A stretch of 64,000 nt of DNA, taken from Diadema antillarum (taxonomy: Eukaryota). The number at the start of each line of letters is the position of its first letter. Positions within the stretch are counted from its first letter, which is position 1. The position numbers and the translations under genes are program-made. The notes under the pieces were generated by a model. The model did not search any database. It was not told where the DNA came from and saw only the letters and a program-made list of their open reading frames with translations. The stretch covers positions 186,001 through 250,000 of the forward strand of contig NW_027270973.1 of the NCBI RefSeq assembly GCF_040938485.1, read 5' to 3'. This document shows positions 2,968 through 37,877 of this stretch, piece by piece.

Positions 2968-4403
2968 TGTTCATAATGTTTGCAACATAATATCGCGTAA
3001 TATAGGTGTTATAAATAGATTGAAATTTCATATTCCACTAAAAATATTACTTATGTTATATTCGTCGTTAATATTGCCTCATTTGAATTATGGAGTTTTA
3101 GTTTGGGGCAACACGCATCAGAGTTTATTTGAAAGAGTGTCCCTCTTGCAAAAGAAAGCCCTTCGCGTTATCTGCCATTCCCCTGTACGTTCTCATACAA
3201 ATACCTTGTTTGCCTCTAACAAGCTCTTAAAAATTAAAGATCTGTTTTTGTATAATTTAGGGCAATTTATGTACAAGTATTGCAACAATTTGCCTCCATC
3301 TATTTTTGATTCCGCTGTTCCTCAAAAATCAATCATTTCATGAATATCCCACTACGCGTTCCAATGAATTCATTTACCCCTTTTACGAACGATCCTTGCT
3401 AAAAACACACTTATTTATATAGGCCCAAATTATTGGAATTCTTTGAATCATGATATAAAAAACGCCATGTATCCATATATTCTTTCAAGAGGAGACTGAA
3501 GTCCTTTCTATTGCAATCGTATGACTCTACAGCACTGAACCAGCCATTTGGCCTTCTTTCTCACATACTGACTTACTCACCTTTTCTCCTCTTTGAAGAA
3601 TAAATTGTAATCTTTTGGATGTTTGTTGTCATCTATGCTATTGCCCAAAGCGTCAAAGAGTTGAATTTCTGTCTGTTACTCCTGTTCATACGTCCCTTCA
3701 TTTCCTTGTTTTTCTCTTTTCAGGCGTTACAATATCACTTTTTTTTTCTCCACAACTATCATCTGTTTCTCTTGACATGCTTCTGCCAAAGATCGCTGTC
3801 TCTGTTGTGCATTTTCGTTTGCTATTTTGTCATCTGTTTGTTAGTCTTGTCCATTCCGTTTTGTCCCGTACAGTCTTTTCTTCAGTAGTTGTTTTGTTGT
3901 CTAGTCTTGTTTCATGTTTGTTCGCGTTTGTTAGTCTTGTCCATTCCGTTTTGACCCGTACAACCTTTTCTTCAGCAGTTGCTTTGTTGTCTAGTTTTGT
4001 TCTATGTTTGTTCGCGTCTATGAAAGTAAGTGTATTTATCTGGGAATATATATTCTCAGTGGGCTTCCAGACTACTTCCTCTTCTTTTTTCTTTTTTTTT
4101 CCTTTTGTATTTATGATGCTTTAATTAATCTTCCCATCGATGTTATTTTTCCAGAGGGGAAACATTCTACAAGCTCTGTCTTTTTAGTGGGTCTCTCCAT
4201 TTTTCGCACTTTAAGCAAGGTTATACATGTACTTCATTTCGACCACTTCTGTTTCTTTTTTACTACAATGTATAATAAGGTCCTCAAATATGTACATTCT
4301 TTTCAATACATAATGTACTGTTTACCTTGTTCTCTGTTGTCAAAAGAAGTGTAACATATATGTTTTGTCGAAAAATGAAATAAACTTTGAATTGAATTGA
4401 ATT
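2964..4403 (+). mobile_element. 5'-truncated L2/Crack-type (CR1 group) LINE: end of ORF2 plus 3' UTR
   Basis: ORF 2873-3343 encodes ISRNIGVINRLK..LYSSLILPHLNYGVLVWG..LQKKALRVI (post-RT region); a frameshifted continuation reads GPNYWNSL; ends with AATAAA followed by a (GAATT)n tail. Confidence 0.85.
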
Positions 4404-6019
4404 AAAAAAAGGAAGGGCGGAAGAGATCAAAGAAAGCAAATGAAGTGTTTAGTTTTCTTATGCTTGAAAGGTCATATGAAATATATAAGTTTGTCCTGTT
4501 ATAGACCTCTACTCGCTACATTCGAACAAACATCACTCTCCACAAGGAAATGGACACACACAATTCTTTTTAAATGTTTACAGCCAAAGAAATGCATCAT
4601 TTCAATGCAATATGCCAGCTACTTATATTGCGGATAATAATCATACATTACAAATCATATGTCCGCGAACAACGACACAGATCTTGTCCCCAAAGCTGGT
4701 CTTTCAAACTGAAATCATTCCCTTGTGGCTAAATCAGAGTGACTCAACTCTTTCTTGCAAAACTTGAACATTATGTCAAGTCGTTGTGACCTCATTACAA
4801 ACAACCCCATTTTCCGTTAGAAGTTATACAGATATTGTATAATTGTTGATAGTGTTATATTAAGTGGTACGCGCAGGATAAGGATCATAGAGTTGCTGCA
4901 AATTTTTTTTTTCTTGAATCTTAGTATTATGAGGTGAAGTTGTCATTTCGCCTTCTCATTCTCAAGGGTTGCTGGTTTGTCAATTCATTTGTGCGTGAGA
5001 ACCCCATTAGTGTGTGCTCTGGGTGAAACATGTCTTATTACTTTTATCATGAGGCTATATTTGATTCACTTTTATTTGCATGTAGTTACGTCATTATGAA
5101 TCTTTCACTTCCATTTATCAGTTATAAAGGTTTTCACATCCTCTCATTTATATGATTCTCTCTCTTATCAAAAAGTGTAGGTTTATACATACAAGCTTAC
5201 ATGCACGATACGTTGATATGATTATATACGTAAACAACCAAATGCGTAATGATATGCTCCACACCGATACTTAGGACCATAGGATTGAATTGACATCAAT
5301 TGTATAGGAGATGATGACCCATCCTCTCTGTACAGTAATTGAACATAACCTGTGTCTAGCATTATCAGAACAATTCAACTTGACTGGTGGAAAGATAACA
5401 CGATTGACATACTATGGCCATGATTGGCATGGATACTTTACGCCAAAATAATCTTCAGCGAAACTTTGATCTCAACTCTTTGATAGGATAGACCTTTCTT
5501 CTGTGAGGGTTGTTCAAAGGACGAACTTAATATACGGTCTGCTCCTAAATTTCTTGCATCCTGTCATAAACAAAGGCAAACACGTGAGTAGGGATTATAA
5601 TAGGATCATAACAACAAGGGCACGCGTTTCGAGTGAGAAGAAAGCAAAGAGATTAGTGTAATCTCGTTGGAAGAAAGCTACTGTCTCAGTGTATTGTTTG
5701 TGCGTCGGTTCAATTGCAGCGCGGCTGTCATGCTTTCAGTCTATACCTGAGGAATGGAACTACATCAGCCAGGGAAAGAACTCGAGTGACAAATCAGTTA
5801 TGATACGAACTACGTCCCAGTCTGTGCCGTTATTACCAAACCTCATTTGGTCCTTTGATTTGACCTGTCAGACTTTCTCTGAATGGAAACTTATGAACTT
5901 CCCAACGATATCCGGCCATACGGGGAATCGAAAAAAAAAATATTTCACTTGGCTGCACACGTCAAACGTTCTCACCCAACATGCCTTATACTAAATTAAG
6001 GTCGTATACACTTTCCAAC

Positions 6020-7069: not shown

Positions 7070-7195
7070 CATGGATTAGGACACTCGCACTCCTCTTTGA
7101 ATAACTGAAGTCGGTGGGCATTCATGAAACTAATGAATAGTTACCTCATACCTAATCCTGTCAAACCCATTGGTCGGTTTATTTGACCAATCAAA
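7070..7195 (+). promoter_or_regulatory. Type A proximal module: Otx, TCF and paired CCAAT sites
   Basis: GGATTA 7073, CTTTGAA 7095, TAATCC 7153, ATTGG 7169 and CCAAT 7187; conserved upstream of A2 and A3. Confidence 0.55.
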
Positions 7196-7386: not shown

Positions 7387-8416
7387 ATGGCTGATTCACT
7401 GCTCTCCCTTCTCCCTCAAGTCTCGACGTCCGTTCCTATCAAAGGTCTTCGTCGTAGACGTCCGACCGTGTTCACCGAATGGCAGCTGGAGAAGCTGAAG
7501 GCTGAATTCGACATCGACCGATATCCCGACATCGTTTCTAGAGAGAAACTGGCTGCCTCACTCGGCCTCGATGAAGACAGAATACAAGTATGTAAAGTAG
7601 ATGTATAAGATGTATAAAATAAGTGATGAAGCAAAGTTGATTATCTCTTGTAATACTGTTTTGATATTACTGAATGTAGATTGATGGTTTCAAATTACAG
7701 CTATCACTTTATTGACTGCTATTGCAATGGAATACCTGATATGAATCAAAATTTGGGAGTCAAACACTCTTAGCACAGCAGCGAGAATATGAATGGCCGA
7801 GGTTAAGAAGCACGTCCTTTTATATGTTCTCCTCGACATTTGATGACAAAAAAAAAAAACAATAAAAAATGTTTATGCATGAAGCAAAATGCTAACGTCA
7901 GATTTGTTCTTTGTTTATCTTCAGGTCTGGTTCCAGAATCGTCGTTCACGCCTTCGTCGAGCTTCACTCAACTCCCTCTCTGCTCGACCAGACACCAGAG
8001 ACAACCAGATCAACAGGTCAACCGACATCAAGGGAACAGAGTCTTCATCCACAAGAAACCGTAAGCGATCAACGGAATGCGACGTCATCGACCAGGAGAA
8101 CACACCGCCGCCCAAGAAGCTCGCCATCAACGACTCACCGATGTCAGTCAATTTCCTGTCTCGTAGCAGCCGATCACCGGGTTCCTGGTCGACTTTCCGT
8201 ATTAGCGACGAACGTGACACCCTGAGTTTACAGCAGACGACATCTCATCAAAAGCGGCAGGGCGCCACCAATCCCTTGATGTCTGTAGACTTCCTCTCCC
8301 GAAGCAGCCGACCGACTTCTTCGTATCCATCGCCATACCGTGAAGGGAGTCTCTACCACAGCCCGTCTCCATTCTACATGGTTGGTCATCCGTATGTCTT
8401 CGTTGTACCGCACTGA
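7387..8416 (+). CDS. pmar1: pmar1/micro1-family PRD-class homeobox repressor, copy A1 (exons 7387-7587 and 7925-8416; 230 aa)
   Basis: Homeodomain RRRRPTVFTEWQLEKLKAEFDIDRYPDIVSREKLAASLGLDEDRIQ|VWFQNRRSRLRR; GT-AG phase-0 intron at codon 46/47; motifs MSVNFLSRSSR and MSVDFLSRSSR. Family assignment is from memory of echinoid Pmar1/Micro1. Confidence 0.8.
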
Positions 8417-11038: not shown

Positions 11039-12102
11039 GTAGCTGATTCGTCGCTCTCACTTCTGCCTCACGTCCCGATGTCTGCTCCTTCCAAGCGACC
11101 TCGTCCTCGACGTAAGACTAGGTTCACCGAATGGCAACTCGAGAGAATGAAGGCCGAGTTGACCAATATCCCGACATCGTTTCCAGGAATAAACTGGCAG
11201 CTACACTGGGCCTGAATGAAGACAGAATACACGTAGGTTTCATTGTCATCTTAAATATAGTATCTGGCATGAAAAGATGTAGTCGACCAATATCTAAGTT
11301 ATTAATTAATTCAAATAATTTCAATTGACTTTTAAATGACACTACATATTAATATTGCTGATAGTCACAGAGTTTCTTAATTTGAAATATCCAGTTTAAT
11401 TATGTCCAATGTAAGCATAACAATGGGGGCAAACGAAACAACCTCTCATTTAAAATTCTACTTGCTTTAACTGAATGAATACTGATTCAGTTTTTATATA
11501 AATCAAGCAGTAATCGAAGATGTGTAATGTCTTAAGAGGCAGAATTGATTAGGCTTTGCATGAGGATGATGACATCAGACTGTTGGTTTTGGGGGCTTGG
11601 CTTAATCCTGATTTCATCATTTTCTTTCCAGGTCTGGTTTCAGAACCGTCGCTCACGTCATCGTCCATCCTCCCTCAAGTCCTTCTCACCTCCCATCGAC
11701 AACCGTCTCGGTGTTGCGGAAAGTGAGACCCACTATCTGCGTAAGAGGAAATGCTTTGCTACAAGCGACGCCATCGACCAAGAGAACACACCGCCGCCCA
11801 AGAAGTTCGCCATCAACGATTCATCGATGTCAGTCGATTTCCTGTCTCATAGCAGCCGATCGTCGGATTCCGGGTCGACTTGCCGCATCAGCGAGGGGCG
11901 TGAAGTCATCAGTTTGCAGCAGACGACATCTCATCGAAAGCAGCAGGGCGCCACCAATCCCTTGATGTCTGTAGAGTTTCCCTCCCGCAGCAGCCGACCG
12001 ACTTCTTCGTATCCATTGCCATACCGTGAAGGGAGTCTCTACCACAACCCGTTGCCATTCTACATGTTTGGCTATCCTTATGTCTTTGTCGTACCTTACT
12101 GA
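11039..12102 (+). pseudogene. pmar1: pmar1-family type B pseudogene, copy B1 (exon 1 about 11039-11232; exon 2 11632-12102)
   Basis: Compared with B2: ATG changed to GTA at 11039; 7-bp deletion (CGACATC) in the homeobox at 11160/11161 causes a frameshift; second eh1-like motif decayed to MSVEFPSR; exon 2 still open. Confidence 0.85.
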
Positions 12103-14345: not shown

Positions 14346-14474
14346 ATGGCTGACTCATCGCACTCTCCTCTCGATCACACTTCAAAGTTCGCTCCTACCA
14401 AGCGACATCGACGACTTGCTATGTTCAACAGATTGCACTTGATATTCTTAAACTGGGCACCAAATCCGACCTGA
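14346..14474 (+). pseudogene. Type C pmar1-like exon-1 remnant 2
   Basis: MADSSHSPLDHTSKFAPTKRHRRLAMFNRLHL aligns with the MADSSLSLL..PTK..RRRRPTMF start of types A and B, then degenerates; no exon 2. Confidence 0.65.
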
Positions 14475-16731
14475 AATGATATTCATATAATACATAATAT
14501 TTACATGATCATACAGGGCTCGACATCAGCGTTGACCAGGTGGCCAGGGGCCACAGCTGCCAAAAAAGAAGAAGAAAAAATATATATATGATATAAATTT
14601 CAACCACAAATTTCAGCGAGAGAGAAGCAGTCATCTGAAGCTGATTCGATCGGGTATCAAATCGACGGGTTTACCACGAACTGTCCTATCTCAAATAATG
14701 ACGTTTTGAGAAAATCGCTTCTAAACATTGTATCTCTCTTTATGCCTTACTTTTCCAGAAATGGCTTATTGCTTATCTATAAAACGCAGGCCATAAGAGA
14801 GAACAGTACCTAGGGATAGTTTGTGCCAAAGAACATGTCACAGTGCCGACAAAGTTTCTAGCAAGAAACTTGTAAACTTACATATTAGTTTACGGTTTCA
14901 TAGAAAAGCAGTATTGAGCCGTATTTATGCGCAGATTCTTTGCACGATCTGTCCTATCTTGCGCGCACTGCAGTAGCGAGTCTTCGAACTTTACCACGAT
15001 GTGACCTATGTCGAAATCAGCGGAGAATCGAGTGTCGATGCTTTACCACGAACTGTCCCATGTTCACGGACCGTATAATATGCATGGGGCGGAACCAGAG
15101 ATGCATTTTTTTATTTGTAATCTTGATGCCCCACTTGACCATTATAACTTAGGATATGGACTCGCACTTTTTAAATACAAATATAATCAAATAGGCCAAT
15201 ATACCAACCAGGTTCTCACGGTTTGTGATAGGCCTCTATTGGAGGGAAAATTCGTAGTTAGCAATGATTTTTCATCTACGTTAACTACACTGTTCATGCT
15301 GATTGTTTCTTTCACCGTATTAAAGGAATCTTGAAGGAAGGGGTGGGAGGCTTCTCAACTTGTCCTTTCAAACATATTTTATAATAATGTCCTTATCGAG
15401 TAGTAGTCAACTAAGCAATGCTTGTAGCATTTTCTGTAATAAATTTCACTGAATACCAACCTTCAGAAATTTAACGACCCTTAACCAAAAACTTGGATAA
15501 TCATGAATAAACACACATGCGGGCACAACCGCACANNNNNNNNNNNNNNNNNNNNNNNNNNNNNNNNNNNNNNNNNNNNNNNNNNNNNNNNNNNNNNNNN
15601 NNNNNNNNNNNNNNNNNNNNNNNNNNNNNNNNNNNNNNNNNNNNNNNNNNNNNNNNNNNNNNNNNNNNNNNNNNNNNNNNNNNNNNNNNNNNNNNNNNNN
15701 NNNTACACAATAACATCTAGATAGCAAACAACATGCATACAAGCAACGCACATACAGACACAACGCACAAAGTGCATAAAGTGCACGACGAAAAATATTA
15801 AATGGGAAAGAAAAATCCCCCCTAACCAAAATACGCATACAAACATCTTTAATCTTGCATAGAGAGATGTACAGAGAGACAGAGAATGACACATAATTTG
15901 AAGCACAACTTTTTTTATGTGTTTACTGACTCACACAACATTTTATTGTAATTAGTCAATAACGTCATCAAACAAAATAATTACCATGCATTAAACGTGA
16001 AATGAGAAAATAATTGCAGATTATGAAATGGGAAACTTTTACAACAGAATTCATATCTAACGAACTGTATGTTCTTTAAAACAATAATATTTCGATTCCT
16101 GTTTAAGTTGCATTGTCGTAGAGAATCACATAACATGGCATGAACAGTTAGTGTAAAAGCATTGACAAAAGAGGGTATTATTAAATTGTTGCACTGCAAG
16201 ACTGTCATTATCTTTTTATCAAGAAACAGGTTTATCATTATCGAAATTCGACAGTATATTCAATTTCCCCCTTTTAATGTGATCCCATTGAAATACTAGT
16301 TAAACATTAGTGAACAGAAGTTGCGGTTACGCTGTCAGCAAAACATTGAAACCATGAAGTCCTGCAATGCAATGAAATGAAATAACTGCATGCAGTGCAT
16401 GTTCTGGTGATAACACATTTACATTTCCAGCTTAAGATAAAAACTACAAATCCTCACCGAAGGGATCATAATTCAGCAGTCAATAATGGTGTACAAGTCA
16501 GACATGTTGATCTCCTAGGCTGTAATATTTAGGCTATCAAACATACATGTATGAAAAACACTTTGCAACTGCGCCTACTGAAGCATCGTTAGAAATCACT
16601 AATGTGCAAAGCTTTATTTTTCTCAAATGAAAAACGATATTGCATGGTTTACTCTAAGTGTGAATGCATGATAAACAAGGCCATATTACCATTGGCCTTA
16701 AAAATTTATGTATCAACCTGAAGTATATGGT

Positions 16732-21060: not shown

Positions 21061-23359
21061 CTAGGGGTTACACTACAGTTAGCCCCGGAGACCCGCCGCT
21101 CTGCGGCGGGGTCCTGGCGGCTACCCCGCAGTTTCGTTCAAGTGAGAATCACGAACAACTCCCTATTGCCACATATACGGCAACTTCACAAATAAACCAT
21201 GGCTAAATGTCCATCATAAACACAGTGACAATATAAAATGAAATATACACTACCCCATTGCCTTGGTCCTTCTCACCAATTTATCTGGAAACTGCATAAT
21301 TTTCCACATTTTTTAGGAGTAGGCGGTCTGCCCTAGTGGAGAGCTTTGCTGCTATTTTGAATGTGTATATCCATCAGTACTCATCTACGCATGCGTAAAC
21401 AATGACGTCAACGTTACGGACGCAAAAGGATATGAATAATGCATCATCGCACGGTGAATATGCATCATGTAGCGAGTAATACAGCTGTCAATGCACTGCA
21501 CTGAATGCATTGTGTGCGCATGTGCAAGTGAATGTGAGTTTTAGTGAGCATCGGTGAGCTGAAGATATTTGCCTTATAAGACAGCATTTTCTGCATCATA
21601 AGCAATGAAATGCATCAAACATTCGCCGATGTGAATCATTTAGGTTTAGTCGACCCATGTAAGTATTCCCAGTAGTTTTTGTTGAAAAATTAAGGAAATA
21701 CAGCGCCGGAACGGCACCCGTTTGGTACAACATTAAAATATCGATGCCAAAACGGCGCAGCCCCAACACTGTACGTTGTACGTTGGGGCTGCTGGTCGCA
21801 GTTACACTACAGTGACACTGTAACGTTAGTCTTGACGCACTAACTCAAAACATTTTACTGTTTGTTATTTTATAAGCTTTTCATGAATTCATGAATTGTC
21901 TTCACAAATATCTAACGATTCTTGTCCTTATACCCAGAGTAGTCTTATAAAAAATAGAAATTCACCTGTAATCCTTGGAACTGATTTCCGGTGAGAGGAA
22001 AGCCGTCCATGACTGATCTTTGATGACAGTACAACTACTAACACCAAGGAGCGCGTATTGATTTATCCCCAACTAGTATACAGCACGTAGGCGCTAGGCG
22101 CAGGCCCGCAGATTTCTGCACGCACACGCACGAAAGCCCGAATTTGTACATGCGCACGTACCTGCACGTAAGTTCTTGCGCACGGGCCGGCACGCGGGGA
22201 CGTGGCGTCCGCGGCGGGTGCAATTCGCAACCGCGTCAAGTTTTACCACAAAGTGACCTATCTGACATAGGACGATTCGTGGTAAAGGATTTGTTACATT
22301 TCTCATCAGAGGGTTTGAGATAGACCACCCTATATTTGTAAAAAATGCGTTTTTTGCTTAGAAACTTTAACACGACAAAGAGAAGAGTCTATATGTAACA
22401 ATTATGCAAAAAACTCAAATTCCCCAAAAATTGAGATAGGACAGATCGTGGTAAACCCGTCGAAATATAGCTAAAATGTAACAGAAATTTTGATGTTTCC
22501 TTTTTATTCGGGTTACTCAGTACCAACATTTCAATAAGCCAGTTCGGGGTTAGCTCATGGGCACATGGGTACAAATGACCTTTCTTCTTTCTCAATGGAT
22601 TAGGCACTCCATTAGTTTTCAAGCGACAGAAGGTATATAAACCTTGCCTGAAGCAACGATTAGTCTCGTTAGTCTCGCACCCTGCATAATATATGCATGA
22701 TGCAGATTTACAAGAGACGAGTAGTGAAGAAGATGCTAGTTTGACACATTTTATAGCTGGAGGGTCTTATTCTCCGTCCTTTCATCAAGTTAAACCTGTC
22801 TTAAAAGGAACAAAACAAAACAAAACACACAGAAACAAACAAACAAAAAACACAGAAGTACATTGAATGAATCGGACAGGAGTTAAATGATATATGACAA
22901 TTCAACGTTTCTCGTCTATTTTTTTCAAGGGAAAAAGAGTCGATAACATCACTACATTATACAAATTTTCAATTATCAGTGCTACATGATTTACTGAGAA
23001 TATTTAGACTTCAAATCTGTTCATTTCCTCTAATTTTTGCTTTTTAAAGGTGACGGTGTTCAAACTAAAGCAAAAAGCAACATGACACTGAATCAAATCA
23101 CACTCGGTACTAATTCAGAAACCATACCGAGATAGTATCCAGGATCTGCAAATAGAACCAGGTTCTGCAATATAATCGACTGTACCACAACGCAGGGATT
23201 AGTCTATTGTTTCTCTACTCTTTTTGTTCCTTGTCGATCTTAGGAAGTTGGTACAAGAGTATTGTTTGGTTTGCCGGCAGCGGACCGACAATCAGACCAC
23301 TAATGAACGAAGGAAAAGTGACAGCTCTCTTGTTATTTGCGACATTAGCGTACTCGCAC

Positions 23360-23460
23360 TCCTCTTTGAATAACTGAAGTCAGTGGTCATTCACGAAACT
23401 GTAACTTCACCTCATTCGCTAATCCTGTTATGCCTATTGGTCGGTTTATTGGACCAATCA
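23360..23460 (+). promoter_or_regulatory. Type A proximal module, copy A2
   Basis: CTTTGAA 23364, TAATCC 23420, ATTGG 23436, CCAAT 23454; the upstream GGATTA is lost through a small deletion. Confidence 0.55.
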
Positions 23461-23653
23461 AACAACTTTGCTTGTTAAGGGCTTGTGAAAGTGGTAGCGT
23501 GGCCTCTCCTATTCATAGCCCACTTAATCACTGCAAGGGTACCAGCTACTTTGGTACTATCACCACACCTCATTCAGATTTTCTTGAAGTTAAGTCGCAC
23601 CTCTGAGGTTTTTCCTACAAACCGGCATCTTTGCAAAACCAATTCAATTCAGT

Positions 23654-24698
23654 ATGGCTGATTCATCGCTCTCGATTCTCTCTCAAGTCTCGACGTCTGT
23701 TCCTACCAAAGGCCTTCGTCGTCGACGTCCGACCGTGTTCACAGAATGGCAGCTCGAGAGGATGAAGGTTGAATTCGACATCGACCGATATCCCGACATC
23801 GTTTCTAGAGAGAAACTGGCTGCCTCACTCGGCCTCGATGAAGACAGAATACAAGTATGTCAGAGCAAAGATGTATAAAATAGATGATGAAGTAAAGTTG
23901 ATTATATCTTTTAATGCTGTTTTAACATTACTGAATGTAGATTGATGGTTCAAATTACAGCTATCACTTCATTGACTGCTATTACAATGGAATACCTGAT
24001 ATAAATCAAAATTTGGGACTCAAACACTCCAATAACAGCAGCGAGAATATGAATGGCCGAGGTTAAGAAGCACGTCCTTTTATATGTTCTCCTCGACATT
24101 TGATGACTTTTTTTTTCTGGCAGTAGTATGTTACGTTTCATGTTAAAAAAATGTTTATGCATGGAGCAAAATGCTAACGTCAGATTTGTTCTTTGTTTAT
24201 CTTCAGGTCTGGTTCCAGAATCGCCGTTCACGCCTTTGTCGAGCTTCACTCAACTCCCTCTCTGCTCGACCAGACGTCAGCTACAACCAGATCGACAGGC
24301 CAACCGACATCAAGGGAACAGAGTCTTCATCCACAAGAAAGCGTAAGCGATCAACGGAATGCGACGTCATCGACCAGGAGAACACACCGCCGCCCAAGAA
24401 GCTCGCCATCAACGACTCACCGATGTCAATCGATTTCCTGTCTCGTAGCAGCCGATCACCGGATTCCTGGTCGACTTTCCGTATTAGCGACGAACGTGAC
24501 ATCCTGAGTTTACAGCAGACGACATCTCATCGAAAGCGGCAGGGCGCCACCAATCCCTTGATGTCTGTAGACTTCCTCTCCCGAAGCAGCCGACCGACTT
24601 CTTCGTATCCATCGCCATACCGTGAAGGGAGTCTCTACCACAGCCCGTCGCCATTCTACATGGTTGGTCATCCGTATGTCTTCGTTGTACCGCACTGA
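23654..24698 (+). CDS. pmar1: pmar1/micro1-family homeobox, copy A2 (exons 23654-23854 and 24207-24698; 230 aa)
   Basis: Intact spliced ORF with GT-AG intron; homeodomain has L16M, A18V and R57C relative to A1; motifs MSIDFLSRSSR and MSVDFLSRSSR. Confidence 0.8.
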
Positions 24699-26781
24699 AC
24701 GCTGTGATGCTGCCTCACATTTAAGGAGGGACTTAGATGTGATGTGTGATATCACATGTTAAGACATTTGACTCTTTGCTGGAACAGACCCTACAGCAAG
24801 CTTCCGACTTCAGAACTCTGTTTCTGTTATCTGAGACACTCGCGATGATGGCTGAATTGAATTCAGCAACATTGTTGTTTATCATGATCTCTATTAACAA
24901 ACATTGCCTTTTGACAAGTAGATCTTCTTCATTTCAACCTGTTTCATTCCATTGGCATTTGTAGAGTGATCGCATGATTTTGTTTCTTGTTCATGGATGT
25001 GTGAACATGTATGATAAGTTACACTGTGTTTCCGTGTGTGCGTGAGGCATGTGTGTGTGCGTGTATGTGTGCGTGTGTGTTAACGTTTATCGTGTGTTTG
25101 TGCTTGAGTGAAATTAAGAGTGAGGTGAAAATGCAGTATTGATGAAACAGTACAGAATAATGGCAGAAATTAATCTGGTTAAAAGCAAAAGCAGAAGCAA
25201 AAAAAAAAAAAAAAACCCAAACAAACAAAAACGTGCGACTTTGAGTGACACGTACGTACACACAGTAATCCACACGCATCACGTCATTTACATCGCACAA
25301 TATCATGACAGATATTCTTTTTAATTCTTGCCTTTATTAAATCTATAGCACACGAGGAGTGAGAAAGAAATTTATTTGACACAAGTTTATACCAGGAGAG
25401 TATACTCTTCAAAAAATACACAAACACACACACACACACACAAAAAAAAAACACTTTTTGAACTGATGACTTAACTTTTCCATGAAAAAGTGTAAATTCC
25501 TGCAATCTCCAGAACATTGTTTTCTTGTCGAAAGAGAGTAGGCCACAAAGACGCCTTTTATGCAAACTAGTTGCGGTGATGATCCTATGACATTTCAAAT
25601 CTTTAATTAGTTTGTGCATGACAATAATATGGATTTTATTTTTCTTCTTAATAATTTGACTACATAACAAAAATAGAACAATAGCGTCAACTTTGACACA
25701 GACTGGAGCGTCATTTTACTCTTGACAAATATCTAATATGATGTATTAGTGGGAGATTCTGTACCAGCACTAACCGTGTTTTAATCGTCCACCGAGTCAG
25801 ACTCGTTACTATATAGGGCTAGTATCATAACCACAGTGCAAGATAAACACTTTTCAACACCATCACAATATACTTTGTACACCTGTCAGAGTGGCCCTCT
25901 ATTGACTGGTTGGTGTTAGGGACATCGATGTTTTTGCATTGTGTATTCAGGTATAGCATGGACAAAATAAATGTGACACGTATGAACAGATGTAACAGTA
26001 ACTCGAAATATATCAAAGTTAATCACAGACAATGAGAATTCATCACAAAGAACGATAGCATAATGACCACAACAATATACTGGCAAATCTCTTGGGCTAA
26101 GATATTGATCACCATGTAGGTCTCGTTAAAAAAACAAAAAAACAAAAACAAAAACTTACAATGAGATAATCACTTCGGTCTTGTGACGTAAGAAAATAAT
26201 ATAGTATGTTACACGGGATTATTCTTACCAACTGGCCTTACTTTTGTGAGAGTGAACTAGATATTCTGTGATCCTGACTTCGATTCCGACAGGTCATCAG
26301 TGAACAAAGAATTATGTGTTACCTTGGTGATGAATGGATAACTGACAATGTTGTTGTTTTTTAATAACAATAATAAGATCCTCTGCAGTGAAGTGCTAAC
26401 ATTTAGACTGTCTTATTACCTCTTAGCTATTCTGGATAAATGAAAGCAAATTCTGCCCTGATGCTATCATTATGACGCTATTGCTGTTCGTTATTATTGT
26501 TATTTGCATAGAGATAATTCGACTCATAGGTACACGCTACATGAAATACAAACAAACGTAAAACGTCTGGGTGTAGACTGTGAGTAACAGTAGTTATCAG
26601 TTTTTAGTTACAGTAATACATTATGAACCCGAAACGGGTATCAATTTGATATCGAGGGTAAGAATAACGACTTGCAATAATCACAACACAGGGTAATTAT
26701 TGTAATTACATCCTGTTTGAACATCAACTTCGCTGCCTCATCGTCTATACGACACTATGCGACTCGAATAAGATAATCCCC

Positions 26782-27123
26782 GCGTTCACATTGTCCCCCG
26801 CGCCGCGGGGACAGCCTCAAGAGATCTTATCTTTTTTACGACTGACCGTTCACATTGGTATCTCATCTGTCCCCGAGCTGTGGGGGCAATTGGGGCTTGG
26901 GGCGAGCTCTGCCAGGCATAGCGCATGCGCACATTTGATGACCACGGCTGGACGCTATCAATTTCGCCCCAAGGTCACTCTCCCCTCCAAATCTTGTCCC
27001 CGTACCCGACTTGATTCGCGGGGACGAGGGGACAAGTCCCAACGAGCGTTCACATTATGGTTTTGGAGGAGAAAGTCCCACAGCTCGGGACTTTCCCCGC
27101 GGCGCGGGGGACAATGTGAACGC
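26782..27123. mobile_element. GC-rich MITE about 0.6-0.9 kb upstream of B2
   Basis: Perfect 30-bp TIR GCGTTCACATTGTCCCCCGCGCCGCGGGGA; absent from the paralogous site near 10445. Confidence 0.8.
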
Positions 27124-27696
27124 AGTGTGTGATTGACAGACGGACATTGACCGACAGACTCCGCCGGTCATTTCTTTAGAACTTTCGACTGATTTAAATC
27201 ACATCTCGTTAAACAATCCCGATGAAAGGGGACAGGTCCATACATTCCTCGATATAGCACGAACAAAGGCGGAAAGTGTGACCCATGAATAGGGATGAGA
27301 GGCGCAATGATTACAACGTGCGCACCGCGCGCGAGCTATTCGGCTATTGTTAGTTCATTGTTGGAGTAAGCAGTTTGATCTTTGCCGGCAAATTAATGAC
27401 CATTCATGAGTGGTCAGACGTGGTTGCTTTTGTTTTGAGTAAAATAGATCTAATGACAGCCTCGTACATCCCGTTAATCCCATTGGTTACATAGTCTGAC
27501 CAATCAACTATTCCCATATCATACATGCAGCACAGATAGGAATTACAGCTTTCCATGAAATGAAAACTACGGACCGGAATCCAGTGGGATAGAAGCTACT
27601 CATAAGCAATTTGTCTTCTTACTTGGCTGAACGTCCGAACAAGATTATCCATCACTGATCCCTCAAACGTCTCTAAGGTTATAATCGCTATCCGAC

Positions 27697-28811
27697 ATGG
27701 CTGATTCGTCGCTCTCACTTCTGCCTCACGTCCCGATGTCTGCTCCTTCCAAGCGACCTCGTCCTCGACGTAAGACTAGGTTCACCGAATGGCAACTCGA
27801 GAGACTGAAGGCCGAGTTCGACATCGACCAATATCCCGACATCGTTTCCAGGAAGAAACTGGCAGCTACACTCGGCCTGAATGAAGACAGAATACACGTA
27901 GGTTTCATTGTCATACGGCATATAACTATCTGGCATGAAAATATGTCGACGAATATTTAAGTTAGGCCTATCAACTAATTGAAATCATTTCAATTGGCGT
28001 TTAAATGACGCTATATTGATATTACTGATAGTCTGAGTTTCTTAGTATGAAATATCCAATTTGATTATGTGAAGCAGCATAATAGCATAATAAGCAGGAC
28101 ATTATAGGAGCAAATAAAGTAACCTCTTATCATCAACAATTCTTCTTGCTTATATATTACCAAATGAATATTGATTCAGCTTTTATACAAAACAAACTGT
28201 AATCGAAGCTGTACAGCTAGTGCTTCAAGAGGCCGAATTGAGCAGGCTTTATATTAGGATAGAAGTATACACTGTTTTTGTTTTTTTGTTAGGTTGATTT
28301 TTAACTAAGTTTAGTCTTGTTTTCTTCATTTTCTTTCCAGGTCTGGTTTCAGAACCGTCGCTCACGTCATCGTCCATCCTTCCTCAAGTCCTCCTCACCT
28401 TCCATCAACAACCGTCTCGACGTTGCTGAAAGTGAACCCGACTGCCTGCGTAAGAGGAAACACTTTGCTACAAGCGACGTCCTCGACCAGGAGAACACAC
28501 CGCCGCCCAAGAAGTTCGCCATCAACGACTCACCGATGTCAGTCGATTTCCTGTCTCGTAGCAGTCGATCACCGAGTTCCTGGTCAATCTCCCACATCAG
28601 CGACGAGCGTGACATCATGAGTTTGCAGCAGACAACATCTCATCGAAAGCAGCAGGGCGCCACCAATCCCTTGATGTCTGTAGACTTCCTCTCCCGAAGC
28701 AGCCGACCGACTTCTTCGTATCCATCGCCATACCGTGAAGGGAGTCTCTACCACAGCTCGTCGCCATTCTACATGGTTGGTCTTCCGCATGTCTTCGTTG
28801 TACCGCACTGA
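27697..28811 (+). CDS. pmar1: pmar1/micro1-family homeobox, type B, copy B2 (exons 27697-27897 and 28341-28811; 223 aa)
   Basis: Homeodomain RPRRKTRFTEWQLERLKAEFDIDQYPDIVSRKKLAATLGLNEDRIH|VWFQNRRSRHRP; same intron position; two MSVDFLSRSSR motifs. Confidence 0.78.
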
Positions 28812-29127
28812 ACGCTGTGATGCTGCCACACTTTCATAGGAGTGACATACCACCCTTCATTACCACAGCCCATCGCTTATATTCTTCATAACGATCCTAA
28901 TGTCATACCACCTTGATCCTGGACATTCGTCGTGACGAGTCGTTGTGAAACCTGTTCTGTGACGTTATCATTATGATGTGAAGCAAAATTTTGAATTATG
29001 GTTGTAAATAAATGTCTATTACCAAATCAACTTCTTGAACAATATACTTTTTCATTGAGGAGTATTTGTTGTGTAATTAGCACGCACGTGTTTCTTGATG
29101 CATTTGTATTGCTTGTATATATATATG

Positions 29128-29181
<54 letters not shown>

Positions 29182-30049
29182 TTGTGTATACATATCATAT
29201 ACTTCATCTGTATTATGAATGTCAGTGTATCTGGCGTGTTTTGAGTGCTTTTATAGTTTTCCTTCAAATAAATATTATGCAATCTATGCAACAGGATGAT
29301 AGAATGAAACGGCATTCACACATACACACATGGGCTAACAGCTAACAGAGCTGAACAGTATTCTATTTTGTAGGAAAATGTATACATAATTTTCTCAAGC
29401 GCTCGCTCGCTTCGCTCGCTCGCGAAGAAAGTAACATCGACATACACTGTAAGGTATAGCTCAGACGTTGACAACGTCAAATAATATAGGCCTACATGTA
29501 AACATGCTATGACGCGAGTAACCGGGGACCATCTGCAAAATATGTACGAAAACAAACAAACAAACAATAACAAAAACTATATCGCCGTAATTGAACCCCC
29601 TCCATTTCCTGAATCATTCCTGAGAAACGACAGTGACTGGTGACTCAGTCAGGATACATCTATGGGCATACCCAGGGAAGATCAGGGGCGTCGAATCTAT
29701 CTCGGGGGGGGGGGGGGGGGGGGGCATTTGACCGGCGCCCCTACGGAAGTGTTTAGGCAGACAAATCATTTATCCCCAAAGCAATTCCCGAGATGAGGAT
29801 AAATCTCGAACTTTCTTAATGGAAAATTGTCCGAATATCGCCAGAACTATGCACCAGATCGTTGTATTGCAATCATAAACATGCAAAAGCTCTGCTATAC
29901 AGGATTCCTTTCGATAGACTTTGTACACTTTTGAGATTGACGTATATTTTCCTAATCTGCGTGTGCAGCAGATCTTTCACTTAACAAAAGCACCCTCATA
30001 TACAGAGGCATCGATGGGGGGGGGGGGGAGATGGTTCTCCCATAAAAGT

Positions 30050-36317: not shown

Positions 36318-36438
36318 ATGGATTAGGACACTCACACTCCCCTTTGAATTGCTGAAGTCTGTGGGCATTCATGAAACTAAAACTTTACCTCATTCGCTAA
36401 TCCTGTCACGCCTATTGGTCGGTTTATTGGACCAATCA
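36318..36438 (+). promoter_or_regulatory. Type A proximal module, copy A3
   Basis: GGATTA 36320, CTTTGAA 36342, TAATCC 36398, ATTGG 36414, CCAAT 36432. Confidence 0.55.
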
Positions 36439-36622
36439 AACAACTTTGCTTGTTTATGGCTTGAGCGAGTGATATTTGGCTTCTCCAATTCATAACCCAC
36501 TTAATCACTGCAAGGCTACTTTGGTAGTATCACCACACGTCATTCAGATTTTCTTGAAGTCAAGTCGCACCTCTGAGGTATTTTCTACAAACCGGCATCT
36601 TTACAAAACCGATCCAATCAGT

Positions 36623-37877
36623 ATGGCTGATTCATCGCTCTCCCTTCTCCCTCAAGTCTCGACGTCCGTTCCTACCAAAGGCCCTCGTCGTCGACGTCCG
36701 ACCATGTTCACCGAATGGCAGCTCGAAAGGCTGAAGGCTGAATTCGACATCGACCGATATCCCGACGTCGTTTCCAGAGAGAAACTGGCTGCCTCAATCG
36801 GCCTCGACGAAGACAGAATACAAGTATGTAAAATCAGGGCTTTGTAAAATAATTGTTAAGCTAAAGATGTTCTTCACCTACTTTGTATGAACGAATAAAT
36901 GCAATCAACCACGGAAGAAGAATCCTGTAAATGATTTCATTTGATCTCATAGATATCTATACATTTATGATAGAGATGTATACATATATCATCAAGTCTA
37001 TATATGTTATAAATTGTTTGAATGACTTTGAACGACAAAATGATAAGACGGTTGTCAAATGTAGCTGCAGTTTACACTTTGGATTTTTTTAACATTTTGA
37101 TTTAGAATGAATATCATATTACCTACGTAAATATAGAACTCAAATATTTTCAGCACCAGCCAGACGGAGCTAGCAATTCATTATTTTTTTCGAAATCTGT
37201 GACTTATTTGTGGTTAATCCGTCGTTGCATAAAAACAATTTGCCATGCCCTCCAACTATTATCTAAATATCCTCAAATACATTGTGTATCAGTTTCATTC
37301 TAGGATTTATGTCCATTACAAGTTCTGTTTCTGCACGAAGCACATAGTTATGATAAAGTCATGTCTTTCTTTTCTTTATCTTCAGGTCTGGTTTCAGAAT
37401 CGCTGTTCGCGCCTTCGTCGAACTTCACTACACTCCCTCTGTACTCGACCAAACATCAGCGACAACCAGATCAACAGGCTAACCGACATCACGGGAGCGG
37501 AGTCTTCATCCAAAGGAAAGCGTAAGCGATCAACCGAATGCGACGTCATCGACCAGGAGAACACACCGCCACCCAAGAAGCTCGCCATCAACGCTTCACC
37601 GATGTCAGTCGATTTCCTGTCTCGTAGCAGCCGATCACCGGATTCTTGGTCGACTTTCCGTATTAGCGACGAGCGTGACATCATGAGTTTACAGCAGACG
37701 ACATCTCATCGAAAGCAGCAGGGCGCCACCAATCCCTTGATGTTTGTAGACTTTCTCTCCCGAAGCAGCCGACCGACTTCTTCGTATCCATCGCCGTACC
37801 GTGAAGGGAGTCTCTACCACAGCGCGTCGCCATTCTACATGTTTGGTCATCCTTGCGTCTTCGTTGTACTGCACTGA
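36623..37877 (+). CDS. pmar1: pmar1/micro1-family homeobox, copy A3 (exons 36623-36823 and 37386-37877; 230 aa; R53C)
   Basis: Intact spliced ORF with a 562-bp divergent intron; helix 3 reads VWFQNRCSR; second motif reads MFVDFLSRSSR. Confidence 0.78.

Follow-up and report, generated by a model that had tools for sequence, protein, structure and literature searches.

What kind of repressor does the homeobox gene that we call B2 encode, and how far has it moved away from the related genes around it? B2 lies in a 64,000-nt stretch of the Diadema antillarum genome (here, the window). An initial annotation had read this stretch as holding two co-existing homeodomain subtypes, A and B, with different N-terminal arms and unrelated promoters but one repression tail, and had proposed that together they form a two-component repressor set.

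Using the B2 exon translations as tblastn queries against the window, we found five two-exon genes within 31 kb, all on the forward strand and in the order A1, B1, A2, B2, A3 (Table 1). Each of the five has a GT/AG phase-0 intron at homeodomain position 46/47; a two-exon structure with the intron in the homeobox is described for genes of this family (PMC5370098). The pairs A1-B1 and A2-B2 are two copies of a single head-to-tail A-B unit, about 90% identical, in which A2 lies upstream of B2. NCBI lists D. antillarum proteins, on a contig of 1,073,883 nt (1.07 Mb), whose homeodomains are the same, residue for residue, as those of A1, A2 and A3; this contig carries more family copies beyond the five of the window. 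Exon 2 of B2 alone matches the S. purpuratus 'paired class homeodomain repressor' (Pmar1), H. pulcherrimus Micro1 and Lytechinus homologues, with E values of 1e-12 to 1e-16, and the homeodomain likewise has its matches among these proteins. On these protein matches we assign the window to the pmar1/micro1/hbox12 homeobox cluster of D. antillarum.

B2 itself is intact. Both of its exon translations are matched exactly by the start and the end of XP_071485447.1 (P0045, 223 aa, 'uncharacterized protein'); the exons were searched separately, and the full-length B2 protein used here is this public record. A near-identical copy of B2, P0044, sits on a second contig. The protein collection contains no transcript-derived protein of type A or B. 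Exon 1 hits the Pfam Homeodomain (PF00046) with an E value of 2.6e-11, the homeodomain is of the Q50 kind with WFQNRR present, and the solved structures nearest to it are all of the PRD class (DUX4, Aristaless, Pax6, CRX and Paired). The C-terminal region has two repeated EH1-like peptides, a feature of the family; such tail repeats have been named EH1 or repeated-peptide domains (bioRxiv 10.1101/2022.03.03.482868). An Rfam scan of positions 22000-30000 gave no match.

Table 1. Coordinates of genes, gene parts and promoter elements. Positions are those of the window, except in the last five rows, where they are those of the locus named; negative numbers count from the ATG.
Feature	Position	Strand	Remarks
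A1 promoter module	7153-7194	+	pattern search
A1 gene	exons 7387-7587, 7925-8416	+	intact; homeodomain identical to P0005
B1 gene	exons 11039-11232, 11632-12102	+	B-type pseudogene
A2 promoter module	23420..23461	+	TAATCC, 10 nt, ATTGG, 9 nt, TGGACCAATCAA
A2 gene	exons 23654-23854, 24207-24698	+	intact, R57C; homeodomain identical to P0004 (D. antillarum)
TCF/LEF-type motif AACAAAG	27262..27268	+	-435 in the B2 promoter; motif match only
B2 promoter module	27475..27507	+	TAATCC abutting ATTGG, 10 nt, TGACCAATCAA; -222 to -190
B2 gene, pmar1 type B	27697-28811	+	intact; ATG to stop, exactly the interval under study
B2 exon 1	27697..27897	+	21-residue N-terminus and homeodomain 1-46; ATG, open frame, GT donor
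B-type N-terminal arm codons	27760..27783	+	homeodomain 1-8, RPRRKTRF; codon alignment
B2 intron	27898..28340	+	443 nt, GT/AG, phase 0, at homeodomain 46/47
B2 exon 2	28341..28811	+	homeodomain 47-60, linker with KRK stretch, repression tail, TGA stop
A/B-homogenised tract	28474..28849 (approx.)	+	tail and about 38 nt of 3' UTR; blastn and dS
Tail repeat 1	28536..28568	+	MSVDFLSRSSR; translation
Tail repeat 2	28674..28706	+	MSVDFLSRSSR; translation
AATAAA	29007..29012	+	likely B2 polyadenylation signal, 196 nt past the stop
A3 promoter module	36398-36439	+	pattern search
A3 gene	exons 36623-36823, 37386-37877	+	frame intact, M7, R53C; homeodomain identical to P0009
Module, locus L001	9779-9808, 16316-16354		
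Module, locus L002	9783-9812		
Module, locus L003	5818-5847		
Module, locus L004	2794-2898, 5734-5838		
Module, locus L006	3761-3811, 1858-1880		

Decay is visible elsewhere in the window. B1 has GTA in place of its start codon, exon 1 has lost 7 nt and so runs into a premature stop, the Otx-type promoter site has decayed to TAATGC, and the 5' part of exon 2 is relaxed, with omega at about 0.9-1.4. Two type-A genes that are otherwise intact carry a cysteine in helix 3, R53C in A3 (37386-37406) and R57C in A2 (24207-24245); these changes may mark an early decay of type-A copies. There is also an orphan exon-1-like stub at 14346-14474, which opens with MADSS and whose arm is degenerate. Upstream of it there is no promoter module, no exon 2 follows before the run of N at 15536, and it is unlike the annotated proteins of a third type, C, that is described below.

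The arms of A and B differ in just the way first proposed: type A has R-R-R-R-P5-T-V/M7-F8 in A1, A2 and A3, and type B has R-P-R-R-K5-T-R7-F8 in B1 and B2. The B arm, RPRRKTRF, is invariant in nine annotated B-type proteins, six from D. antillarum and three from D. setosum. RRRRPTVF, the type-A arm, is that of Pmar1/Micro1 in S. purpuratus, H. pulcherrimus and Lytechinus; it is a common trait of family members rather than a formal criterion, and it is found in A1, A2 and A3 but not in B2. Given this agreement of A with the other urchins, A is the conservative type and the B arm is derived, by R2P, P5K and V7R. In the codon alignment the step from A to B takes 1 nt for R2P, 2 nt for P5K and 1-2 nt for V/M7R. 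A word search with the homeodomain region for B-type arms outside Diadema returned Diadema proteins only. The output of a HMMER search likewise held no B-like arm; it consisted mostly of unrelated multi-homeodomain predictions, clustered at 50%, a level at which the subtypes are not resolvable.

Positions 2, 3, 5 and 7 of the arm sit in or near the minor groove, and the usual homeodomain residue at position 5 is arginine. The canonical Pmar1 arm has proline there in its place, and type B regains a basic residue. Over the whole homeodomain, A and B show fixed differences at positions 2, 5, 7, 24, 32, 37, 41, 46, 56 and 59. Positions 47, 50, 51 and 54, the base-contacting residues of the recognition helix, are identical in the two types, so that any difference in specificity would be limited to the reading of the minor groove or of flanking bases. 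In the N-terminus ahead of the homeodomain, 6 of 21 residues show fixed differences between A and B, as do 3 of 8 in the arm. In all, 12-13 of the 60 homeodomain residues differ between A and B, whereas functional pmar1 paralogues of Lytechinus and of Heliocidaris tuberculata have 0-3 homeodomain differences (bioRxiv 10.1101/2022.03.03.482868). The end of helix 3 had also been used to separate the types, with SRHRP in B and SRLRR in A. This describes the window, apart from SRLCR in A2, but we reject SRHRP as a mark of type B: residue 58 is either P or R among the nine B-type proteins, and only H56 is diagnostic.

We compared the flanks of A and B by blastn (word size 11, E 1e-5) and obtained three matches: exon 1 from -13 to +207 (80%), about 65 nt opening exon 2 (77%), and that exon's 3' half with about 40 nt beyond it (93%). 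Nothing was matched upstream of -13, in the intron, or more than about 40 nt past the stop. Smith-Waterman local alignments of the 600-nt promoters between types scored within the range of dinucleotide shuffles (z from -0.5 to 1.5), and nhmmer profiles found no match between A and B introns. Within a type, the B2 intron aligns with that of the D. setosum B gene, and promoter identity is 81% across four B genes and 85% in A. Promoters are thus alike inside each subfamily and unlike between A and B outside a common module, which is the pattern of the P. lividus subfamilies. The 3' flanks show a faint collinear nhmmer similarity around a (TA)n(TG)n microsatellite at about 29120-29175, which lies some 310-365 nt past the stop in both A and B units and gives a faint sign that the two 3' flanks are anciently homologous. 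The statement that promoters, introns and 3' flanks do not align therefore holds for blastn, for local alignment and for nhmmer on introns; it does not extend to a promoter module of 33-42 nt or to this weak 3' similarity.

The module is the sole nhmmer match between A and B promoters, a short block found at the same offset in 8 of 8 comparisons. Read by eye, it is a composite element, TAATCC, ATTGG, about 10 nt and GACCAAT, made up of an Otx-type site with a CCAAT pair; after ATTGG and the spacer of about 10 nt comes GACCAATCAA. The composite pattern matches the window four times (A1, A2, A3 and B2; 0.00 expected), 190-235 nt upstream of the ATG, and across the 64 kb there are exactly five copies of the 10-mer GACCAATCAA, one for each gene (0.23 expected); the pattern was chosen after the alignments had been viewed, which makes these counts for the window post hoc. 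That caveat does not apply to the pattern's recurrence, again at the same offset, in loci that were fetched independently from other species. We found the module in every upstream flank fetched from Diadema, S. purpuratus and L. variegatus, 150-270 nt from the ATG. Carriers include the D. setosum A and B genes, a second D. antillarum B gene, and the D. setosum type-C gene with its neighbour; in S. purpuratus pmar1 the module lies at -183, and in L. variegatus both pmar1 copies have it in duplicate. The type-C gene and its neighbour, also a family gene, stand head-to-head about 2.4 kb apart (locus L006, 616-1643 on the reverse and 4001-5083 on the forward strand), each with its own module; L006 lies next to L001, the locus of the D. 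setosum B gene, on one chromosome. A further candidate, a 3968-nt scaffold labelled as metagenomic (L005, ENA ERZ23488543), has a 2.7-kb tandem repeat with a sand-dollar-like pmar1 whose arm is ARRLPTIF, and is host echinoid DNA in a metagenome assembly; its module is degenerate only, and we did not count it as a carrier.

The B module has the camarodont spacing, with TAATCC abutting ATTGG and 10 nt before TGACCAAT. In A the abutting TAATCC position has decayed and a TAATCC is found some 10 nt upstream of it, at a place where B has CATCC, which looks like a turnover of the Otx site in the type-A module. Judged by this distribution, the composite module is the ancestral proximal promoter element of the family, retained in all Diadema types, and the fact that A and B both possess it is an argument for one or more regulatory inputs in common. 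We therefore cannot uphold the view that the two promoters are unrelated: A and B both keep the module about 200 nt upstream of the ATG, as do S. purpuratus and L. variegatus pmar1.

The family is known for a transient early zygotic expression in micromeres that is driven by beta-catenin/TCF and Otx, and B2 has candidate sites for both inputs, TAATCC at -222 and a single AACAAAG at -435. The latter is kept in B1 and in the D. setosum B gene and is absent from the B gene of locus L002. Type A has two motifs of the TCF type (WWCAAAG), conserved at about -290 and -364, and type B has one at about -430 or none; these are consensus matches chosen once the alignment had been viewed, the divergence of the two Diadema species (about 15%) being too low for footprinting, and the contrast would be a weak sign of regulatory difference. 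Cavalieri et al. 2017 (PMC5370098) describe the pmar1-family genes as having no conserved cis-element beyond the TCF motif. The module of Diadema, present in all its subtypes and also in S. purpuratus and L. variegatus, qualifies that statement. Our search of the searchable literature, which does not extend to older subscription papers on micro1/pmar1 regulation, found no paper that joins pmar1 with CCAAT.

The repression tail is common to A and B, as had been suggested, and its history differs from that of the rest of the gene. We computed dS and omega by the Nei-Gojobori method, exon by exon. In exon 1, dS is 0.43-0.72 between A and B and 0.04-0.14 within a type; in the 5' part of exon 2 (homeodomain 47-60 and linker) the corresponding values are 0.9-1.4 and 0.03-0.24. 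In the tail, the 3' part of exon 2, dS between types falls to 0.10-0.23, no larger than within a type (0.01-0.25), and the homogenised tract is 93% identical between B2 and A1/A2 by blastn, against 80% for exon 1. A tail so uniform beside a linker at 0.9-1.4 points to gene conversion, which would keep the tail alike across the types.

To place the subtypes in time, we turn to a tree of 33 proteins built from the N-terminus, homeodomain and linker, leaving out exon-2-only fragments and a few redundant rows. Clade B has support 100/99 and a stem of 0.4, clade A has support 82/92 and a stem of 0.19, and a third Diadema subtype, C, with the arm RRRRPTKF, forms a clade with support 100/100 and a stem of 0.7. 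Each clade contains both Diadema species, and the Diadema types as a whole are separated from camarodont and irregular urchins (87/68). Alignment of B1 and B2 with their D. setosum counterpart, the B locus L001, extends over 460-590 nt of promoter, through intron and 3' flank, with 83-85% identity. From the tree, the dS values and this alignment we conclude that the B unit, with its own non-coding DNA, predates the split of the two Diadema species and is far younger than the A/B split. Within clade B the long stem is followed by short internal branches, a pattern typical of change followed by constraint.

Omega within type B is 0.15-0.21 in exon 1, and B2 against its D. setosum relative has 0.2-0.36 in all three gene parts; by these ratios type B is under purifying selection. 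Between the types, omega is about 1.2 in the arm (homeodomain 1-9) and 0.12 in the helices. The arm value is suggestive of change followed by constraint, although neutral drift of a loosely constrained arm is an alternative that could also produce it, and we do not claim positive selection on the B arm, the counts (about five non-synonymous and two synonymous changes) being too small. With arm positions 2, 5 and 7 fixed, a well-supported clade B and purifying selection on both types, the co-existence of two subtypes is real.

The most likely reading, in our view, is that B2 is a functional gene of subfamily B, which is old and of the Diadema lineage, within the pmar1/micro1/hbox12 paired-like repressors, and it is probably a partly diverged paralogue that overlaps with A in function rather than a wholly separate regulator. 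The B protein would then be made in the early embryo, from a promoter that may still receive the ancestral input of Otx and CCAAT factors. To go by the family literature, it would bind TAAT-type sites with its Q50 homeodomain and repress through the shared EH1-like repeats, like Pmar1. The altered arm would most likely tune minor-groove contacts; the placement of its residues in or near that groove makes an effect on affinity or flanking-base preference more probable than one on the core motif. The rest of the B promoter, diverged and with fewer TCF-type motifs than that of A, may tune level, timing or domain. The repressor function of Pmar1 and its target hesC are known from the camarodont literature, in which overexpression of pmar1 by mRNA injection turns the embryo to a skeletogenic fate, with repression of hesC (bioRxiv 10.1101/2022.03.03.482868).

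A reader may prefer to see A and B as repressors with a division of labour, joined by one shared tail but differing in DNA specificity and expression domain, comparable to the hbox12-a-like (animal/dorsal) and pmar1-like (micromere) genes of P. lividus. Among the six positions of the arm that are commonly regarded as determining specificity, three do differ and are fixed, the arm combines an omega of about 1.2 between types with invariance within them, the promoters are unalignable outside the module, A has two conserved TCF-type motifs to the one or none of B, and promoter-defined expression subfamilies have already been published (PMC5370098). We nevertheless consider this division unlikely, because the core promoter module is common to both types at the same offset, the recognition-helix contacts are identical and the arm statistics rest on tiny counts. 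The idea of a two-component set fares no better, since Diadema has the third subtype C and, of the window's two B copies, B1 is dead. That type B is a neofunctionalised Pmar1 paralogue, its rebuilt minor-groove arm, with Pro at 2, a basic residue back at 5 and Arg at 7, giving it another target preference and its TCF-poor promoter another domain or timing, strikes us as quite unlikely.

The two types might instead be redundant, the substitutions of B being near-neutral drift in a birth-and-death family and B a source of extra dosage only. Copy-number variation and rapid turnover are on record for the family (PMC5370098), the window has its dead B1 and its damaged A copies (R53C, R57C), the helix-3 contacts, the tail and the core promoter are the same in A and B, and the N-terminus ahead of the homeodomain is about as diverged as the arm. 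Redundancy is doubtful all the same, given that nine genes from two species all have the same B arm, that clade B has its long stem and short branches, and that the A/B homeodomains are much further apart than those of functional camarodont paralogues. It might also be objected that B2 is silent or decaying, an unexpressed gene whose frame is merely still unbroken. Its neighbour B1 is dead, and P. lividus has copies that went undetected (PMC5370098), but the low omega against the D. setosum relative in three gene parts, the intact splice sites, promoter module and AATAAA, and the near-identical P0044 on a second contig make this very improbable.

B2 can be set beside several known systems. Pmar1 (S. 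purpuratus, L. variegatus) and Micro1 (H. pulcherrimus) are, like B2, two-exon genes whose intron falls at homeodomain 46/47; they share with it a Q50 paired-like homeodomain, two tail repeats of the MSVDFLSRSS type and a tandem multicopy arrangement, and the spacing of the Pmar1 promoter module is the same as in Diadema B. They differ from B2 in having the arm RRRRPTVF instead of RPRRKTRF, and the canonical-armed Diadema type A stands 12-13 of 60 homeodomain residues from B. In P. lividus, the genes of the hbox12-a-like and of the pmar1/micro1-like kind resemble the Diadema cluster in placing subfamilies in one cluster as head-to-tail pairs, in having promoters that are similar within and dissimilar between subfamilies, and in copy turnover and pseudogenes; their coding sequences, however, are nearly identical and the split is regulatory (PMC5370098), whereas in Diadema the homeodomain itself differs and the A/B split is older than a species divergence. 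Sea stars and cidaroids have older relatives of pmar1, the phb (pmar1-related homeobox) genes, for which duplication and regulatory rewiring are reported (Yamazaki et al. 2020, cited in PMC7719182). In our tree, which covers Diadema, camarodont and irregular urchins, B groups with Diadema A and C (87/68) and not outside pmar1, and it has the pmar1 tail. As an analogy only, mammals likewise have, in the cleavage-stage DUX family, PRD-like homeobox genes that stand in tandem multicopy arrays, evolve fast and belong to the early embryo, and the solved structures that score best with the B2 homeodomain are the homeodomains of DUX4. DUX proteins differ in being activators with double homeodomains, and no orthology is implied.

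The family, its tandem copies, its pseudogenes and, in P. lividus, its promoter-defined expression subfamilies were known already (PMC5370098). The searchable literature contains no paper analysing Diadema pmar1, and absent from it are a homeodomain subtype that differs at the coding level and has been retained in several copies across more than one species, the division of the Diadema genes into three subtypes, and the conserved promoter module. The Otx/CCAAT-pair module is a concrete candidate for the ancestral switch of the family, and the A and B arms amount to a natural arm-swap experiment on how the N-terminal arm tunes homeodomain specificity.

Pmar1 heads the double-negative gate for skeletogenic micromeres, the developmental gene network that has been studied best. 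Diadema branched early among the euechinoids, a position that is useful for dating this circuit. If the neofunctionalised reading of type B were true, Diadema would run two or three distinct early repressors from one cluster, with a tail interchangeable by conversion, and would parallel, independently and at the coding level, the hbox12/pmar1 split of P. lividus. More generally, a conserved and selected second homeodomain subtype would mean that the 'pmar1 input' in the Diadema lineage is more than one protein species.
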